This document shows positions 5,306 through 18,480 of a stretch of 64,000 bases of DNA, piece after piece (position 1 is the first letter of the stretch; every line of letters begins with the position of its first letter). The notes beneath the pieces were generated by a model. It was given only the letters and a program-made list of their open reading frames with translations. It was not told where the DNA came from and searched no databases. The position numbers were made by a program, and so were the translations under genes. Source of the stretch: Takakia lepidozioides (taxonomy: Eukaryota; Plantae; Bryophyta); contig CM060731.1 of NCBI GenBank assembly GCA_030704615.1, forward strand, positions 31,000,001 to 31,064,000. Direction: 5' to 3'.

Positions 5306-7233
5306 TGTTTAACAATTCTTGCGCTCCCTTCCCACCAACTCTTCCCTCTTTCCTTCCAGAGCTGTATGCTCTATAAATTGTTGGACGTTAAACAAACGTC
5401 CTCCTCATCTTCATCTTCTTCTCACTCGCACACATCCCCAAGGATACCCAATGTCTCTCTTGTTCTCTTAGGTCTGAATGAATCATGTAGTAAGGCTGAA
5501 AACTCCCAAGTAGAAGCTAGTTCCAGATCATGGTCTGGGGCCTGCCCCGACGGAGGGTCTTCTTGGGGGCTGCCAGAAAAAAGAGACCTCACCTTCCCAG
5601 AATGGGGATAACAGTAATGAAGAGGCAGAGAGTGTCACAGTCATGGGACATTAACCACCTTCTACCTGCCCTATCCGGTCATGTAGGGAACAATGCATAT
5701 ATGTATGGGACTGTATAAGCAGTATCGAACCATCTACAACTTGGTTAGACAGGGAGATTTTCTTTCTTTCCCTTTTTGTTGCATGTGGATTTGATGATCT
5801 TCAAGTGTTCAATTCTCTTTGACACTTTCATACATGTGGGTTTGAAACACAAGACCTCTCAATTGGAACTCTCGGTTAACCAATCAAACTAGTTACATAC
5901 TTCGGCCTCAATGATTATCAATGGCAAGAGAGGTTCAATGGTGCGGATTCGAGATCCATCAATCCAATAAAACCTTTCCCTTGCTGATAACACTGTAAGA
6001 CTGCTACCACTTGGAATTCCAACTTGCTTCCATTACTCAGAAATACAGTAGATTCCTACTGTGCCTCGACATGTCAGAGAACAATGGGCAAGGTATGAAT
6101 CTTGAGAAACAAAGAGCCTCGTCCATGTGCTTGAGTTGAATACACTTCTGGCATAAGTATCATAGAGCAGAGGCTATTTGCATTTCTAGTTTTACGACAT
6201 CACCGCATCAAGGACACAGTCAGCCTCTATTGCAAAACCATGCAAGACAGCACCCTTACTGCACCTGTCCTTTTCAGCAAAACGAGCTGTGCACAGCTGA
6301 GCCTTGCATCCTCACCCATCATGGCAGGCACAATGAGGGCCCTTTATTACTGAAACAACTTTGCAAACACATGGCATCGGATAAGCAATTGATATATGAA
6401 TGGCGCTAGCACAAGATCCAATGAGGAATTTTTTTTTTTCCTCTCAATGAATTGGGACTTGATGAATCAAAACTTCCAATCTTACTCTTACTTGATATTA
6501 CTACTTACTCCAGTTCACTTGGGACTTGTTGATTTTTCAATTGATCAAGATCTTACTTGTTTACTTAAGTAACCAAGTACTTAGCAGAGTCAGCTTATGC
6601 CATCCCATTCGAAGGATTTCATGGTCTCCATAAGTTTCCCACCACAGGTACATTCTGCACAACAACAAACACTCTTGTGAGCAACAACTTCTGGCATAAT
6701 GGTCTGATAATTAATCCTTAACTAGAACCCATCTATTGAGCTTTATACCCCTGTCATGACTCACAGTTGCACTTGCACTTGCAATTGTGAGGTTAGTGGC
6801 AAACCATAGAAACCATTCATTCACTATATGACACAATCATGTTTTCTGTTTGGAAGGTGCCCTACACTTACAAAGGTCTTCTTGGTGCTTCCATACAAGT
6901 AGCACCTATACACTGAGGATCTGAGTAATGGGCATGCCCAACTTTAAGGCAGATACAATGGGTACTATGACATGTCTTCAGAATCTGCCCTTCTGTGTCT
7001 CATGCAACCTAGTTCTGTAGCATGTACAGTCAAGAACCTGACACAAAGTACACCTGCAATGTTTGGGATGCAGTGCTTACCTTTAAAAATTTAATGTGAC
7101 AACGAGCTCCTTTATGACCATGCCTGCTAGAAGTCCCAAGTATTTGAATGATGACTAAACGTTTGAAATCTCCTGTCATTTGCCACCAGATTACCATGCA
7201 AGATCCCTCAGAAGGTGACAGGTGTTCCATGTT

Positions 7234-9847
7234 TCATGTTTTGGCATCAAGAAGGCTCAAATCTGTGCTGCTACTGGTGGCAGCACCAACCAGCTCTCCA
7301 CCAAGGTGAAAACTGTCACTATCAACAGAGGTGGAGTCTAAGCCCTTATATTTGCTGTGAGAAAGAGGAAGGCCGGCACCACACAGCAAGGAAGTCCCAG
7401 TCATCTTCATTTTTCGGCTCAGGCTATTTGAGGAAGGGCCAAAACGCAGTTTATTAATGCTTTGCAGCTTGTGCTGCGTCTCAGGGGGCAAGGTGTTGAA
7501 GCAGCTGTAACATACACAGCTACTGTCCAGCCCACATTGTCCAGAGGGGCCATGGGGTGAGATACGGGTGTGCTTTACACAAAAAACACTCTGGCACTCT
7601 CGGCAAAAATGCTTGCTGAAACTCATCCGCCAATCTGACCAGTAATGCCAACGATCAAAGCGCACTTTGCACCCTTCACGATGATTGCATCTGCATTCAA
7701 CCTCAAGTGTGCAAAATTATCGTGAGATGATTACTTCATCATATCATACATTCAAATCAATATAAGCTAGTCACTGTTTTCATTTTTTGTATTTTGTCAA
7801 TGTTGAAGTGCCATCTTCAGACATACAGCAGGCGCTGCCTGTTAACTGAGAAGGACCTCCTAAAACAAGTATCACTGCATTCTTCAAGAGAGGGTTAGTT
7901 TAAGAGTGCAATACAATAGACCAGAAGCTTCGCATATTGCTTACATTGACATCCTAGTACAACATCCAAAGTTGTCAGACCCTAAGATGCAGTGAAGGCC
8001 AAATGATTTAGGGAAGTCACCAACTTTTGCCAATGAACAGTTCTCACCTGTATTTCCTTCTCTGTTGAGGCTTAACCCCATTCACTTTGAAATCCACATC
8101 CCATTTCGTCTTCAAATCATTGTTACTATGAGTGTGGCCACTGGGATTGCTCGAAGCTGAGACCCGTTGACTGTCCACTTGGTTGAAGGAATGTACACTG
8201 GTGGAATGGACGCCGGATGGTCCCGACAATTTGAAGCTTCTGGTGATACTATTTTCCCCGAAGTAAAGGGCACTGCTGTTGGAGTGATTTGACCCCTCCG
8301 AAACACTTCTGGCATGACCCTCTCGGAGCTCTGTAACAGGTGAGACAGTTTGCAGTTTGCTTTCAAATGAAGGCAAGCTCAATATTGCATTGTCCAGATT
8401 GGAATTGAAACTAGCCGCCTGCCTCACTATCCTGTCAGTACAGATTGCCTCCAGACTATCAGCTCGTGTAAAACATCTTGCAGACTTTTCTGTGGATGAG
8501 AGTCCGGACCTTCCGACACCTTCTTTAGGCTGTGCTAGGCTAGAGAGGATCAAGATATGGGTATGTATGTAGTTCCAACTCATGAGAACCAAAACACAAA
8601 AACGAGCCAGAGTCCTGAGGCACAGATAACGACTTTCTTGCCCGTCCACGACAATCAACCAAAGCCGACTCACCACCTTCACTTTAAGGATCACCCAAGC
8701 TGCCACTGTTACGCGTGAGCAGAAGCTGTTCCTTGAGAAAATAGCCAGCAGCAGTAGGCCGCCATTAAAGGATGAGATCCATCCCCATGAATCACCTGCA
8801 CTGCTCCAGACATTCTTCTTCCTGTGAAGATCTGACAGAGATACATAGCTGGGCTCCCCTTGATGAGGAACTGGATAAGCATGCTCAAGTGAAGGCATAT
8901 TGGCATTGGAGACACACTGAGTTGAACCAGGATGAAGCAGGGCTATACATCCACCCAGCACTAACCAATCAGAAGGTCCATGGCCCCCCCACGCTTGTGC
9001 TCTGTAAGACAATGGCCTTCCAAGACTGACTAAATCTGTGTCCAAGAAGAAATCCTCGCTGGTATCGGCAATCTGTACCCATGTCAAGGTAGTGACCGAC
9101 CAGCGCTGAAGCAAGTACTTGTGCACAGGGGGATAGCCTCTGGAGGAGGGTGGGGCCCAATGCAATTGGATGCCACCAGAACTGGAATTTTCACACAGCA
9201 AACCTTGAGGGGGACCAGGGGTGGCCCCAATCCCAAAGATCTGTCGCACTATTGCATGGGTAATCTTTGTTCGGTGCAGCAAACTCTTCACCCCCAACTC
9301 CTCTGCCAAAGCTCTGCTCTCATGTTCAATGAGAGCTGGGAAATCAAGACCAGTGATTGCAGTCCAACGGAATGTCTCAGCATACTGTGGTAACTGAAGC
9401 CCATGAGTGATCCACTCCACTACATGGTCGGCTGTCATCATATTTTGCAAATGGTTCTGCAACCGCACAGATGTCCCCCTCATTTGAACAAGGCATTCGA
9501 AGGTACCAACAGGTTGACAGCACATTAGAGCACAATAGATCATTCAAAGATAAAAATAAACTATGGGCAACTGTAGGTACAAGAATTCTTTCTTTGAATT
9601 TTGCAGAAGTCTATCCCCAGCATTCATAAGCCTCACAACTTCAGGAAGGTCACTGCTTTTGTGGAAGATGTCCATTGGGTAACAGCAATTGCCATGACCT
9701 TTACATAGCAGTCTTCAGGCAATTACATCCTTAAGAGCCCATCACCACGAAAATCTCTAATATACTGTTTGTGGAGTCAAAAGTCAGTTCATGAGATTCT
9801 GGATATTTGCTACTGTCCATCATACCATTTCAATTCTTACATTACTA

Positions 9848-9880
<33 letters not shown>

Positions 9881-10973
9881 TTGACAAAAATAAGAAAAGC
9901 CCCTCCTGAGCGAGGACCCATTCTTCTGGCCACATGGGAGAATGTCTTTTGCTAACGCTATATCTGACCAACAGAAACCACAACACTCCAATGGCTAATC
10001 TTACCAGCAATTCTTCTGTAGAGATTGCATTGCCCCCATAGCTGAAATTGAAATCAAATGGACGAGACATTGATGAATCAGTCATCCTCTCTATTGGTCC
10101 GGACTTATCCTCCTCTGATTTGTCCAGTCTTGCATCAAGTGATTCCAAGAACTGCCACCTCCACATTTGATGTTAAGTGATAACCAGATGTGTATACAAA
10201 GAGAAATAGACAAGCATGCGAAAAGATTAACCAGATATATGCAGATGGCCAAGAAGATGGTTCATCTATGTGCTATTGCAAAACAGAAAAAACCTTCAAC
10301 ACAAATAGGACAAGCGACGGCCTGCTGAAAACCTTGGTGGCTTCGCCCTGCTCAATCTCTCCATCCCCATCCTCGTCAACAGAGCAGAAAAAGCTTTCCA
10401 AGTTGTGGTCTAAGTCTGCATAGCACGATATCAGGGCAACCTCGTCACCACCTCACATCAACATGCCCCTACTTAGGACACATAGATAAGCATGTAAGGA
10501 CATTAGCAATCCTGACTCACACACATATGCAGGTAGGGATGAACTTCTGATGGTCATCCCATTTTGTGAACTCTAGCCTCTCATCACCCTGAGGAAGATA
10601 AGGAGATAGGAGGATAATTGGCTGTGAGGCGGGACGCACAGGCTTAATAAGTTTTGTATTGCAGTTGACAGGTTTAAGTACAATTTTCGGTACACACTAC
10701 TGTGGAATGGCCACCAAATTTTCCAAGGACCTCCCCAAATGCAAGTTGCCTCGACAAAGTTTGGACCTGGAATGCAAAGTTTCAGGATGTACTTCTCAAT
10801 TTTTCTAACGTCCCTGCAGAACCTAACCATAAACATGGCGCCAGGAAAAGAAGTGCACCTTTTGGTTTCCAGGTGGTCGCTTTGGAGGCGGGGAACAACA
10901 ATAGCAGGAACAGTAAAGGGCGGAGGAATTTCCGTTGTCCGCAGCTCAAGCTGCGTGCCCCACATCTAGCCAT
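7234..10973 (-). CDS. STIM-like EF-hand/SAM protein with FN3, hydrophobic (TM) segment(s) and C-terminal FYVE-like Zn finger; exons 10973-10859, 10415-10333, 10151-10005, 9456-8048, 7690-7234 (~736 aa)
   Basis: All four introns are GT-AG and phase-consistent (1,0,0,2). Signal-peptide-like RPLLFLLLLFPASKA; EF loop DEDGDGEIEQGE; SAM MTADHVVEWITHGLQLPQYAETFR...HRTKITHAIVRQIFG; FN3 PGPPQGL...LHWAPP...YRAQAWGGHGPSDW; Cys cluster KHFCRECQSVFCVKH...CVCYSC. The exon-1 donor and start codon are less certain. Confidence 0.8.
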
Positions 10974-12385
10974 AGTAAGCCGACAATGCCTTGTGTCGTT
11001 GGCCATTCCTTCTCTCTCACAATTGCCCCCCATATGCAGTGCCTGAAGGGGTTGTCCCGCCCTGGCGCGTGAAGTGTACCTCTCGCCTGCCGACACAACG
11101 GAGGATGACTAGCCAAGAGTACTAGAGGTCACTTCAAAAACCGGGTGGTTTCCTGAAAGCAAGCTGTAACCCAGTGTAAGAGAATGTCAGCCCAACAGAT
11201 ATCAGAATCCCTCCACAGGCAATCGAAGTGCATTTGACCACAGCAATTCTCCCTCAAACTAGTCTGGATGTGTACTACAACTGAATGTCTGTGTATATTA
11301 CCAAGAAGACAGCCAGGTGACCTCCAACTTTCTCAAGCAGCATACACCAAGGCGAAATTCATTAGCCAGAAAGAACAGTAGCAGGAGAAATAATGTTAGA
11401 CCGAGGTTCTACAAGCTCACCATTGCACCCATTATCGCTTTTACAGAAAATCATAGAAGCTGAAGCGTAATCCAGACTCAGATTTCTTGCTCTGCACTCT
11501 ACCGAATGGGACCAGGGGAGACGCACGTGTGCTGTTTTCGTCCATAATAAGACAGCATCCCGCCACGGCAAGAGCTCACAACACTGAACTCTTCCCAACA
11601 CTCTCCACTGACATGTCTGTCTGTCTGTCTCTGCCTACTCTTTCTGGTTATCGTCCGTTACCGACAGTATTCTGCTGCTTCTCGTCAAACACAAGGACGT
11701 ATTTCCCATGTGTTCGTCCGGGAATGAAAAGTATATCCTCTTACACTCAATCAATTGCATTTTCAGTTATTTTTGTATTTTCAAACGTTTAGTAAGGGCA
11801 GTTGATGCAGATCTTAAATCGCAGAATCTTACCCCTACTCGATATTACAGCAGGAGATATCGCCACGATTCAGGAATGAAGGGCCAGATCTGTGTCTCGG
11901 CCTCCCAAGGCGGATTGATCCCTCAGGAATCGTTCCAGAGAACGGAACGGAGGAACAAAGAAAAAAGTTGTACCAATTTTTCTTAACGGCCAACAAATTT
12001 ACAAATCACCAATGTGTAGTTCAAGGATTGAACCCAGGATCACCCAGGATATTAAGAAAGGCTTGTCATAGAAAGGAAAATTGAGTATCGGCAAGGCCTG
12101 GCCTCGTGGCGTGCGTCAGCCGCCCTCGTGCTTATTCGGACGAATCCTCTCGCGCCACGTGTTTTTATTTTCTCACTGTACTGAACCAACACACCGCCCC
12201 AGACAGGTGGGAGAAGATGATATCACACACAACTATAGGATTTGAACCCAGAGTAATCTGGGTGGCACTCATGGTTATTAAGTTTTATTTTAATAAAACA
12301 ATGTAAAAGAAGAGAAGAGAAAATAGAAGAAAACGGAAAATTGTCAAATTCAGAAATAATGGAAAGAGAAAGGAAAGACTGTAAG

Positions 12386-12435: not shown

Positions 12436-12547
12436 ATTGTTGAGAGAGACGACCTTGCTGATTGCACTTAGAGGTTGTGGGGATTGATGTAGCTTTGGTC
12501 GATTGCTGGATTTGGTTATTGGCCGCGGGTGTCAGTCTCTGCACGCA

Positions 12548-13828
12548 ATGACTTACACCGGGTTAGACAGCTTTGTTTCCAAGGAGGAACTGTTGGATTC
12601 CTGTTCAAGGAAGGATGGGGTTGACGAGGAGACTGAAACTATGTTACGCCGCTATGGCTGCGACCTGATCCAGGAGAGTGGAATCTTGTTGAGGTTGCCT
12701 CAAGCAGTCATGGCAACAGGACAAGTGCTTTTGCATCGGTTTTACTGCAAGAAGTCATTTGCGGAGTTCTTTGTGAAGACGGTGGCGGCAAGTTGTGTCT
12801 GGTTGGCAGCAAAGCTCGAAGAGTGCCCGCGGAAGATTTCGGACGTCTTGCAAGTGTTCCATCGAATTGAGCGCAGGCGTAACATGTCACCCCTTACCTT
12901 GTTGGGATTAGCCTCTCAGGAGTATGCACAGATGAAGAGCGATCTGATCAGAACAGAGCGACACGTTCTGAGGGAGATGGGATTTATTTGCCATGTGGAA
13001 CACCCGCACAAGTTCATCATCAGCTATTTGAAGCTGCTTGAGGCGCCGGAAGAGCTCACGCAGGTGGCTTGGAATCTTGCAAATGACAGCTTGCGAACTA
13101 CGCTTTGTGTCCGGTTTAAGAGTGAGGTTGTGGCGTGCGGAGTTGTGTATGCTGCGGCAAGGCGATTCAAAGTACCGCTGCCTGACGACTGGTGGGTAGT
13201 GTTTGATGCAAAATTTAGTGAAGTTGAGGAGGTTTGTGTAGTTCTTGCAGACCTGTATCGACAATCAAAGGTCGAGTACGTCAAAATTGGAAGAGATTCC
13301 AAACTATGTATATTGAACAGCAAATACTGGGAACTGTCCCAGGCTGTACTACAAGAATTGACATCGAAGGAAATAGTGAAAGGAGCTGCCCCTTCCTCCC
13401 AGGCACTGCTGAGCAGGACCTCTGATGGTAGGGTTGCAAAAGACCCTGCGGTAAGAGGGGAATTAGCTTTGAAGGATCTACGGAAGGATCTGGAAGTAAT
13501 TCGAGTATTTTTAACTAACGTGGATAAAACTTCAGCAGGAAAGGTTGATCCGGTTAATCAAACTGAGGATGACAACAGTAGGGGAAAGAACATGGGGAGA
13601 TCTACGGATAGAGAGCATGGGAGGGCGCACCAAAGGAAGCGGGACAGAGAAAGGATGATAGAGAAGTACAGGGAACGAGGTAGAGAAAGTGCTCAAGATC
13701 AGCAGTATGGGCGCAAGGAGGTAAGCAGGGACTTGGGTCATTTTGAAAATCTTGGAAGCCGCCATTCTTCTCAGAGGGATGTTCGGCTGGTGGTTCGAGA
13801 AAAGAAGCGGTCGCGGTCGCAACATTAA
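12548..13828 (+). CDS. CYCL1: Cyclin L1 (intronless)
   Basis: YGCDLIQESGILLRLPQAVMATGQVLLHRFY, EMGFICHVEHPHKFI and AWNLANDSLRTTLCVRF match plant cyclin-L1; R/E/S-rich tail. Single uninterrupted ORF. Confidence 0.92.
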   Translation: MTYTGLDSFVSKEELLDSCSRKDGVDEETETMLRRYGCDLIQESGILLRLPQAVMATGQVLLHRFYCKKSFAEFFVKTVAASCVWLAAKLEECPRKISDVLQVFHRIERRRNMSPLTLLGLASQEYAQMKSDLIRTERHVLREMGFICHVEHPHKFIISYLKLLEAPEELTQVAWNLANDSLRTTLCVRFKSEVVACGVVYAAARRFKVPLPDDWWVVFDAKFSEVEEVCVVLADLYRQSKVEYVKIGRDSKLCILNSKYWELSQAVLQELTSKEIVKGAAPSSQALLSRTSDGRVAKDPAVRGELALKDLRKDLEVIRVFLTNVDKTSAGKVDPVNQTEDDNSRGKNMGRSTDREHGRAHQRKRDRERMIEKYRERGRESAQDQQYGRKEVSRDLGHFENLGSRHSSQRDVRLVVREKKRSRSQH

Positions 13829-13844
13829 CGAAATCCTTCTAGGA

Positions 13845-16450
13845 GGACCACATGGAAAACCTGGGGGTGTTACTTTTATTATTGACCGAATTCAGTGCCA
13901 TTCTGTGCATTTCAGGGCATGTTTTTCTTACATCGGTGCAGATGAATGTTGCTCTGATCATTGCCTCTGTCCTTATTTCCGTTGAGAATTGCTTGCAGGG
14001 AGACCTTGTGTTGACCAGTTTCATGACAGTCCATCTTTCTGCAAGGAGCCCTGCCTGGGTGCAAGAGAGGCACTAATTACTGGGGGGCAATTCTCCATAT
14101 ATCTGGGGTAAGATTTTCCCAGTTTCTCCTGTATAATTTACATCACTGCAGCAAGTGTTCTTAGCAGATCCTACACCAACCTTTGGAGAACTGGTGTGTC
14201 ATCGTCAATGTGTCTGTGGTTGGGGCTATATTGGAGGGTAGATGGCCATCTGTTTGGTATCCTGTCTTCTGATGGGTCATTCACCAAGTTGTTAGATAGA
14301 CTGAAAAGAGCAGTGCTGTGGGCCAGCAATGTTGGCTTCCTGCTAAAACGAGCCATACAAGGCTGGCTGTACATGGACATTTGAAATGCATCTTGTCAAG
14401 GAACAGATGAAGCAGTTGTATACAAAGTCTCTGAGTAAAGTGAAGTTGTCTACTTGAAACTCATTACTGTTGAATGGTGGAAAACTGCAAATTTGTTGCG
14501 CAAAGTGACAATGTTTTGTGCAAAGGCTAGCGCACCTTATGGCTATTAGACCTTGATGCAACTGATTTGTTGAAGTGTTCGGAACTGAATGGCACATGTG
14601 GGAAAAGAATAGCTATATCCACTGATGTGACTTTGCTCATGTGGCCTTTCCATGTTGGTAACTGCATGATGTGTACAAATTCGAGCTAACTCTATGTCAC
14701 TCTGTACAACCCATGAGAATGGGTTGGATATTTATGGGAGTGTATGTAGAGATTAGAACTGAATTTGTTGACGGGGGAATGGCCTTAGTGGGCTCTGAAG
14801 AGATCAAAGCTTCTTGATATGTCTTGTATCCACCCCAGAGGATATGGGTACACGAGCAATTCTAGAATTGGGTGAATGATGAACTCCACAACAGTCATCT
14901 CTTGTCCAGTCATTTCTAGATATGAGATGAGATGACTGTTCTTTGATTTCATCGTCTACCCAACTCTGCAAAGCAGGATGATACTTCAGCAGTTACATCT
15001 CGGTAATCACACTAAAGATGGAGCACCTGGACATAGTAGGGAAGAGAACAAGGATAGGTCAACAGCTAGATAGCATGGAAGAGCAAACAAAAGGAAGTGG
15101 GCAGCAGATGGATGAGAGACCATCGGTGCATGTAGAGAAATCAGTTCATTCTCATCATGGTAATGCCTGAATGAGGGTCACATGGAAAACCTGGGTGCGG
15201 TGCTCAAGAGTGCCAATACATGCATGCTTTCTGACATGTCTGTAGGTTTATGTTGCTGCCTGGGCAACCCAGGGAAATCCTCTTCTGACTTGTACTTTTC
15301 TTGCTTATTTCTCTGGAGAGTCTCTCACAGGGAGACCTGATGTACGACAGCTTTATCATACCCATCTTCCAGCAAGGATCACTGGCTGCAGGGACACTCC
15401 AGACAGAGCATGAGCGTATTCCCTCCATGTGAGCTGGGGGTAAGATTCAATGTCACTGAATTTGTGCTCCATTCACACAATTTGTAGCGAAGTATTTCTA
15501 GCAGACCCTACACATAAGCTTGGAGAAGGAGTTTGTCACTATCAATGTCTTTGTAGTTGGGGCTCTCTCGGGAGTAGATGGCCATGTGGTTTTGTTCCTG
15601 TGTCCTGATGCCCCATCCACACTCACTACTGGTTAAATGAGCGGAAAAGAGTATGTCCCTGGGCTGAGCAAAGTTGGCTTGTCGTATACAAAGCTTTCAG
15701 TCTAGATGTCAAGAGGCAGGTTTAAGTGGTTCTATCGTTAGTCTTTGAGTTAAGTGAATTTGTCATTCATATTTAGTATCGGGCAATTGAAAATTTGATG
15801 TGTAGAGTGACACATATTTGTGCAAAGGCTAGTGCACCTTGTGGCAGTTATAACTTGAAGCATTATATCTGTGGGTGAGTTGTTTGAAACTAGATTGCTA
15901 TATCCAGAGAGGTGCCTGCTGAAGGTGGCTTTTTTATGTTAGTTTATGCACGATTCATACCAGTGATGGACCCGGCATCAGATGGGTTGAGTATTTGTGC
16001 AAGCATTTCTAAAGACTAGAATTAAATTTGTTGATCTGGGAATTCCCTCCACGGCTAATCAATTGTTCTTTTTATCTGCCCCAAAAGATATGCCAATTGA
16101 CGTGCAATTCCAGAACTGGGTAGATTGCGGATTCTGGGAACTGTGATCTCCTCTGCTCATTTCAGGATGTGAGATGACCGTTATCTGATCCATGATTTCC
16201 ACTATGGAACCGGACTGTACTTCAACAAGAAAGGAAAATCAAGTTATTTACACTAAAAAAGGAGCAGTGGACAACAGTAGAGAACAGGGGTAGGTCAATG
16301 GATCTAGAGACTGGGAGGGCACACTAAAAGGTGGGACAGAGAAAGTGCGAACAGGGGTAGGTCAATGGGGATGTAGAGACTGGGAGGGCACACTAAAAGG
16401 AGGGACAGAGAAAGTGCGAAACATCAAGAGAATGGGTGAGGAGTTTCAAT
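13845..16450 (+). repeat. Two diverged ~1.3-kb tandem units, possibly decayed cyclin L duplicates
   Basis: Shared anchors catggaaaacctggg (~13849, ~15181), gggagacct (~13998, ~15331) and gcaaaggctag(c/t)gcacctt (~14520, ~15822). Both unit ends resemble the cyclin 3' coding segment gacaacagtag...gggagggc.cac.aaagg..gggacagagaaag. Confidence 0.6.
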
Positions 16451-18117: not shown

Positions 18118-18204
18118 CAGCACTTTATTATATTGATGTGTGAATTAAATATTGATGTATTCGGATATTACAAAACTGATCTTTGGATTTATTAGTTATT
18201 AAAA

Positions 18205-18480
18205 TATTGAAATGCTTGTTGAAATACTCACTGAACTATTCAAATACTTGTTAAAAACTGGCTGAAATATTAAAATAATTGCTGAAATACTGGCTGAAGT
18301 ACTGAAATATTCGCTGAAAAACTGGCTGAAATACTGGCTGAAATACTGAAATGCTCGATGAAAGAATCTTGATTGAAATACTGAAATAGCTAATGAACAC
18401 TGAAATACTCGCTGACAAACTGGCTGAAATGCTGAAATACTTGTTGAAAATCTTGATTGAAATACTGAAATACTGAAATA
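18205..18480. repeat. Degenerate minisatellite of (g)ctgaaatact units
   Basis: More than 15 imperfect copies of tgaaata(c/t)t. Confidence 0.8.

Follow-up and report, generated by a model that had tools for sequence, protein, structure and literature searches.

A STIM-type EF-SAM module joined to a different output end in a Takakia gene and its relatives

STIM has been described in reviews as missing from plants, green algae and diatoms, which keep Orai, and whether SOCE (store-operated Ca2+ entry) exists there has been questioned (PMC11894410, PMC8318260, PMC11085791). Among green plants Orai is reported as far as the gymnosperms, with none in angiosperms and again with STIM missing (PMC11894410, PMC8318260). 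It is also reported from diatoms, brown algae and oomycetes, in which a different protein was expected to do the job of STIM (PMC11085791). In an earlier survey Orai was not found in oomycetes and a match of SAM alone to STIM1 in P. infestans was dismissed (PMC4820453), and the reports on oomycete Orai are thus in conflict (PMC4820453, PMC11085791). No protein other than STIM is said to join EF-hand and SAM (PMC11506743), and the origin of STIM has been placed near animals (PMC7016017). A first-pass annotation of 64,000 nt of the Takakia lepidozioides genome (contig CM060731.1, positions 31,000,001 to 31,064,000; this whole stretch is called the window) noted that STIM is generally described as missing from plants while Orai homologues are reported from algae and non-angiosperm land plants. 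It read a spliced gene in the window as a STIM-type Ca2+ sensor and suggested that it may be the ER store sensor of a plant SOCE-like system. The question raised by the locus is whether the gene carries a true relative of the STIM sensor and, if so, what such a sensor would act on.

The gene is encoded by the minus strand and its coding part ends at 7234 (stop codon 7236-7234). Contigs assembled from two public runs, which belong to two studies, skip six GT-AG introns. The RNA nature of both runs is a guess of the database tool; we read them as transcripts because their contigs skip introns, which fits transcripts. The joints in the coding region were located at 10415/10859, 10151/10333, 9456/10005 and 7690/8048 in contigs of the two runs, and those in the untranslated regions at 11163/11302 and 6654/7081. 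The exons defined by these contigs are as follows.

11302..11400, minus strand: 5' UTR exon, upstream end approximate (joint 11163/11302, run X2)
10859..11163, minus strand: exon 1, with 5' UTR, ATG 11033 or 10973 and a signal-peptide-like segment (contigs, hydropathy)
10333..10415, minus strand: exon 2 of 83 bp, with the canonical EF-hand (exon shared with Sphagnum and Selaginella)
10005..10151, minus strand: exon 3 of 147 bp, with the exit helix of the EF-hand, a variable insert and the hidden EF-hand loop
8048..9456, minus strand: exon 4, 1409 bp, SAM, FN3, membrane helix, two more helices and low-complexity linker
7081..7690, minus strand: exon 5, Zn finger, tail, stop codon 7236-7234 and 3' UTR
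6600..6654, minus strand: 3' UTR exon, downstream end approximate (joint 6654/7081, both runs)

The four-exon model of the first-pass annotation, with the EF-hand in an 83-bp exon, was joined by contigs of both studies, and all peptides quoted in it are present in the spliced frame. Its interval, 9230-10973, was too short for the gene, which runs on to 7234. The joined frame was translated for reading frame and hydropathy, single exons being used as queries in database searches, and it was open over 756 aa with ATG 11033 as start, or over 736 aa with ATG 10973. Introns 1-3 are identical in codon and phase in Sphagnum and Selaginella, as is the 83-bp exon. A second transcript, about 85-90% alike, contained the same EF and SAM exons behind another 5' exon (contigs over 8898-10417) and is derived from a paralogue elsewhere in the T. 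lepidozioides genome. Three differences between the window copy and the paralogue were listed in the EF exon, all of them silent, and 21 of the 36 differences listed were at third positions. Mis-splicing is ruled out by the transcript joints and the intron positions common to Sphagnum and Selaginella; a pseudogene is ruled out by the open frame, transcription and the third-position differences from the paralogue.

From its N-terminus the protein carries a signal peptide, a canonical and then a hidden EF-hand, SAM and FN3, followed by a membrane helix, two more helices, a disordered linker and a FYVE-derived Zn finger. The segments were located as listed below.

~10973-10878, minus strand: signal-peptide-like segment with a basic n-region, the core LLFLLLLFPA and an A-x-A end (hydropathy)
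10377-10342, minus strand: canonical EF-hand loop DEDGDGEIEQGE (motif)
10046-10011, minus strand: hidden EF-hand loop FSYGGNAISTEE with the equivalents of F108 and I115 of STIM1 (alignment)
9232..9441, minus strand: STIM-type SAM, above the Pfam cut-off, with I204 and I208 at the positions of L195 and L199 of STIM1
8947..9219, minus strand: FN3 (weak match to Pfam fn3), predicted on the same membrane side as EF-SAM
8734..8787, minus strand: probable transmembrane helix with a conserved Arg at its end (19-residue helix in an orthologue model; alignment)
8542..8730, minus strand: two helices, 28 and 31 aa in an orthologue model (model, alignment)
7501..7689, minus strand: FYVE-derived Zn finger with 12 conserved Cys/His (profile)

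The core of the signal-peptide-like segment had a KD value of 2.86 over 10 aa in the window protein, and of 85 family members 64 showed, by hydropathy, a similar hydrophobic core ahead of the EF-hand. By motif, the first EF loop was canonical in 96 of the 106 non-animal members. The second was canonical-looking in 34 of 90, many of them algal, and the strand-helix pairing of the hidden EF-hand was seen in both orthologue models described below. STIM1 is kept quiet by two residues in its last SAM helix, Leu195 and Leu199 (PMC11506743). Their equivalents were I/L and I/V/M, respectively, in all 11 land-plant rows of the alignment, and the equivalents of F108 and I115 were kept in the same 11 of 11. 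Two N-glycosylation sequons, at residues 121 and 225, are predicted to face the lumen or the outside. The LPQY.ETFR likeness to STIM1 noticed at first is present in this protein, and its T is particular to this copy, as orthologues mostly have EAFR. Within the window SAM (9441-9232, minus strand) FRWTAITG stands in place of FRQNAING of the orthologues, the Asn being more than 90% conserved in the first alignment. The window copy may be slightly relaxed relative to the paralogue because this Asn is replaced.

When the window SAM piece alone was searched against PDB sequences, STIM2, STIM1 and worm STIM came first (E 6e-5 to 1e-4), and the next SAM followed about 100-fold behind (E 0.012). A moss EF-SAM likewise retrieved STIM first (E 7.5e-7). 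A profile of plant and diatom sequences placed worm STIM at rank 1 in PDB, and among the matches listed only STIMs covered both parts. By HH-align, the profile of 106 non-animal EF-SAMs matched the STIM profile at 99.65% (E 4e-25, 131 columns). Structures were predicted on orthologues from Ceratodon (moss) and Selaginella (lycophyte). The top three Foldseek hits of the Ceratodon EF-SAM AlphaFold model (pLDDT 81) were STIM EF-SAM structures (E 8.6e-6, TM 0.62), with a VIA Z of 13.2 over 139 residues, compared with 7.5 against other, lone SAMs. As alignment A3 had contained 4 animal STIM rows, its search and the Ceratodon model were partly circular; because of this, search and model were redone without animal rows, and the outcome was unchanged. 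The Selaginella model built in this way matched STIM EF-SAM with E 1.9e-6 and Z 13.1 over 141 residues. In these orthologue models the last SAM helix is predicted to pack on the EF-hands in the manner of STIM.

Compared with animal STIM1 and STIM2 (PDB 2K60, 2L5Y) and C. elegans STIM (6PW7), domain order and predicted packing are alike, as are the hydrophobic anchors at L195/L199, and equivalents of F108/I115 exist in streptophytes. Land-plant members differ in that some 15-20 aa are inserted between the two EF-hands. Taken together, sequence and models indicate that the EF-SAM module is almost certainly homologous to that of STIM, as one unit. The proposed order of canonical EF-hand, hidden EF-hand and SAM behind a signal peptide was borne out by sequence, profile and predicted structure, and so were the expected profile likeness to STIM, with STIMs ahead of unrelated SAMs in PDB, and the STIM hits of the predicted structures. 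Among observations open to computation that had been named in advance as speaking against such a gene, such as transcripts that fail to join the EF-hand exon to the SAM exon or searches favouring unrelated SAM families, none appeared. Four animal STIM-type proteins (P0155, P0190, P0212 and P0213) contain two tandem EF-SAM modules each.

The first-pass annotation had described a land-plant gene. A word-based search returned 19 relatives, including mosses, Selaginella and Ginkgo, and a diverse full-length alignment used as query in the same kind of search returned nothing informative. A full profile search, run over 1.84 billion representatives, yielded 1103 matches at E <=0.001. Members of the family come from green algae, from bryophytes, lycophytes and gymnosperms, and from diatoms, oomycetes, thraustochytrids and haptophytes; presence in land plants was thus correct and restriction to them was not. 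Named members were found in Physcomitrium (two, XP_024371677 and XP_024374730), Ceratodon, Sphagnum, Selaginella (XP_002974863), Diphasiastrum, Ginkgo (two), Spirogloea, Closterium, Chara (GBG85518) and Chlorokybus. Further named members belong to Picocystis, Tetraselmis, Gonium (KXZ44899), Pedinophyceae, Ditylum, Phaeothamnion, Mucochytrium and Pavlovales, and one cluster dominated by Oomycota had 70 members. The databases name these proteins automatically as 'Calmodulin', 'EF-hand domain-containing' or 'uncharacterized' and assign them no function, and their architecture is that of the window gene. Calmodulin and CML proteins consist of four EF-hands alone, whereas here one or two EF motifs are part of a multidomain membrane protein. 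No angiosperm member was recovered in any search, which is good and not conclusive evidence, since the 50% clusters could hide members. A description of the family was not found in the searchable literature, six accessions included, and an earlier passing mention is possible. It is also possible that the SAM-only match dismissed in P. infestans (PMC4820453) is a member of the family. In a subgroup with Mucochytrium (P0061, P0062, P0063, P0069, P0073, P0075, P0078 and P0092) EF-SAM-FN3 apparently occurs twice, as judged from two profile stretches and a second FN3 at about residue 450-600.

A quick, unrooted tree, with no choanoflagellate STIM among its rows, separated 16 STIM rows from 106 family rows by a long branch with support 100, so that the family was not nested within animal STIM in this tree. 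The rows with all named green species formed one clade (99) that roughly followed the species tree, and the window copy grouped with mosses (96/89). Contamination or recent transfer from an animal is ruled out by these two groupings. Spirogloea and Closterium lack flagella, and their family members rule out a purely ciliary role.

In STIM a single transmembrane helix directly follows SAM. In the family FN3 lies between SAM and membrane, a feature absent in the animal STIMs examined. FN3 was present in 89 of the 94 long proteins among the best 150 of the 1103 matches, and the FN3 of the Selaginella model matched titin FN3 with Z 15. On a rough, uncalibrated insertion scale the transmembrane helix was marginally hydrophobic and weaker than that of STIM, and the first helix after FN3 had the best score in most orthologues. 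Because the helix was scored on such a scale, the topology is one that we infer, and a single membrane pass is most likely according to the models. The two juxtamembrane helices are conserved in land plants and zygnematophytes, are unrelated to CC1/SOAR and may act at the membrane surface or bind a partner. An Atlas search with the post-membrane helices gave nothing informative. The linker behind them was long and of low confidence in the orthologue model.

The CC1/SOAR region, the Orai-gating part of STIM, was looked for and was absent. The first STIM reading held for the EF-SAM module, and the suggested role as ER store sensor of a SOCE-like system is a candidate one. The best match to CC1 reached 9.5 bits in one sequence (E 0.011), compared with at least 77 bits in STIM controls. 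The best match to SOAR was 2.2 bits in 155 family sequences, window exons 4 and 5 included, compared with more than 130 in the controls. SOAR/CAD (PF16533) was absent from the Pfam families listed for 62 members (control P0219, E 2e-36), and HH-align of the post-membrane profile with the cytosolic part of STIM gave 0.75%, which is no match. The window protein has no polybasic tail, and basic ends occurred in only some family members. No ER-retention signal was found in the family tails; the STIM tails inspected were likewise without a classical one, though STIM stays in the ER. Because neither CC1 nor SOAR was found, the gene product is no canonical STIM.

In place of CC1, SOAR/CAD and the lysine-rich tail of animal STIM, the family carries the FYVE-derived finger, which was present in 75 of the 94 long proteins among the best 150 of 1103 matches. 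Its profile best matched WDFY3, Vps27, EEA1 and Hrs in PDB (E 1.5e-5 to 1e-3). Pfam recognised FYVE in 17 of 40 fingers, the window protein lying below the cut-off. Eight zinc ligands occur in FYVE spacing, one of them being His. The Cys/His spacing is that of these four FYVE proteins, and the family finger differs from them in four extra conserved Cys/His and in sitting on a membrane protein. The PI3P motifs WxxD, R(R/K)HHCR and RVC are degenerate in plants, the window protein having SKHFCR and SCVC and no WxxD, and diatom-type members are nearer to FYVE and keep the R/K-H-H-C motif. In several algal members (P0070, P0089 and P0126) short W-containing basic amphipathic motifs follow the finger and may be calmodulin-binding helices, judged by their looks. 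A conserved sensor with a replaced output end is, as read from the sequences, what is new relative to STIM.

We consider the protein most likely to be a luminal sensor of Ca2+ depletion whose output end is unlike that of STIM. Owing to its signal peptide, EF-SAM-FN3 would lie within the ER lumen and the Zn finger on the cytosolic side. Ca2+ on the canonical EF-hand, to which the intact loop points, would hold the last SAM helix in the EF-hand cleft, as the predicted packing suggests. When luminal Ca2+ falls, EF-SAM would by homology loosen and oligomerise as in STIM, and FN3 may act as a rigid spacer that relays this change to the membrane helix. Once clustered, the FYVE-like finger could bind phosphoinositides of the facing membrane with higher avidity, replacing the polybasic tail of STIM, and the juxtamembrane helices or the finger might engage Orai in the stead of SOAR. 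Of the parts of this model, a Ca2+-dependent switch is likely and a location in the lumen of ER or endomembranes fairly likely; Orai as target is tentative, its chances falling somewhat short of even. That the STIM-homologous luminal sensor acts as store sensor for plant and algal Orai is correspondingly put forward as a tentative reading, a little below an even chance.

Orai is favoured as target because of distribution. The range of the family resembles the published range of Orai; this overlap is at the level of lineages and is taken from published statements, and the shared absence of sensor and Orai in angiosperms amounts to a single event. Conservation of the juxtamembrane helices is limited to streptophytes, so that no family-wide Orai-binding segment besides the finger is evident. 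The lack of CC1/SOAR and of an ER-retention signal, the cell-surface-like FN3 and the weak membrane helix all stand against the Orai reading. It is possible, with doubt outweighing confidence, that the activator of Orai which is missing in green algae, non-flowering plants, stramenopiles and haptophytes is this family. In that case store sensing by EF-SAM and its coupling to Orai would be older than the divergence of animals and plants, SOAR would be a later replacement of the output end in the animal line, and angiosperms would have lost sensor and channel together.

The intact EF-SAM without SOAR would also suit a STIM switch with another target, the protein being a tether or trafficking adaptor at endosomes or at contacts of the ER with endosomes or vacuole, or a regulator of a pump or another channel. 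The FYVE-derived finger is the sole cytosolic domain kept family-wide, and the R/K-H-H-C motif of diatom-type members points the same way. We regard such a target as rather unlikely, as it leaves the apparent co-loss with Orai in angiosperms unexplained and the PI3P motif is mostly lost from plant fingers.

FN3 is typical of cell-surface proteins. Signal peptide, FN3 and one membrane helix, together with the two sequons and the lack of an ER-retention motif, are the layout of a plasma-membrane receptor, in which an EF-SAM-FN3 ectodomain would sense cell-wall or external Ca2+ and the protein would signal, or be endocytosed, via the Zn finger. The sequons are equally compatible with an ER protein, STIM, too, stays in the ER although its inspected tails show no classical retention signal, and no kinase or other known receptor output is present, which makes a receptor improbable. 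Very improbable is a mere resemblance to STIM, in which an ordinary pair of EF-hands was fused independently to an ordinary SAM, or a relic that has lost its Ca2+ sensing: the Pfam EF-hand_STIM1 match is weak and below the cut-off, the EF exon alone fails to align to a STIM, the branch between STIM and family is long and AlphaFold, trained with STIM structures seen, may be biased, yet the SAM alone prefers STIM to every other SAM, 131-141 residues match in colinear order, most members have a canonical EF loop, the EF-exon differences from the paralogue are silent, and only two non-family EF-SAM proteins, both animal STIM-type, were recognised in the best 150 of the 1103 matches from 1.84 billion representatives.

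Whichever its target, a broad, vertically inherited family with a STIM-type EF-SAM contradicts the statement that STIM is unique in this respect (PMC11506743), and its breadth suggests that the sensor module arose long before animals did. For the Orai reading, the family is a candidate for what switches on the unexplained plant and algal Orai channels, and if this is true, Orai gating without SOAR is possible. With two named genes in Physcomitrium, a tractable moss, and with volvocine, diatom and oomycete relatives, the SOCE question becomes testable.

Other features were observed around the sensor gene. An uninterrupted cyclin ORF (12503-13828, plus strand; Cyclin_N and CycT2-like_C, cyclin L-like, with an R/E-rich tail) lies head to head with it about 1 kb apart and is possibly a retrocopy. 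Downstream of this ORF about 1 kb is duplicated (13823-14785 and 15153-16048, about 1.3 kb apart, 71-74% identity). A Rhomboid protease gene (~5305-4200, minus strand; Pfam Rhomboid E 1e-12) lies downstream of the sensor gene on the same strand, and a degenerate short-period repeat array with spacings of 12 and 20 bp occupies 18194-18457.
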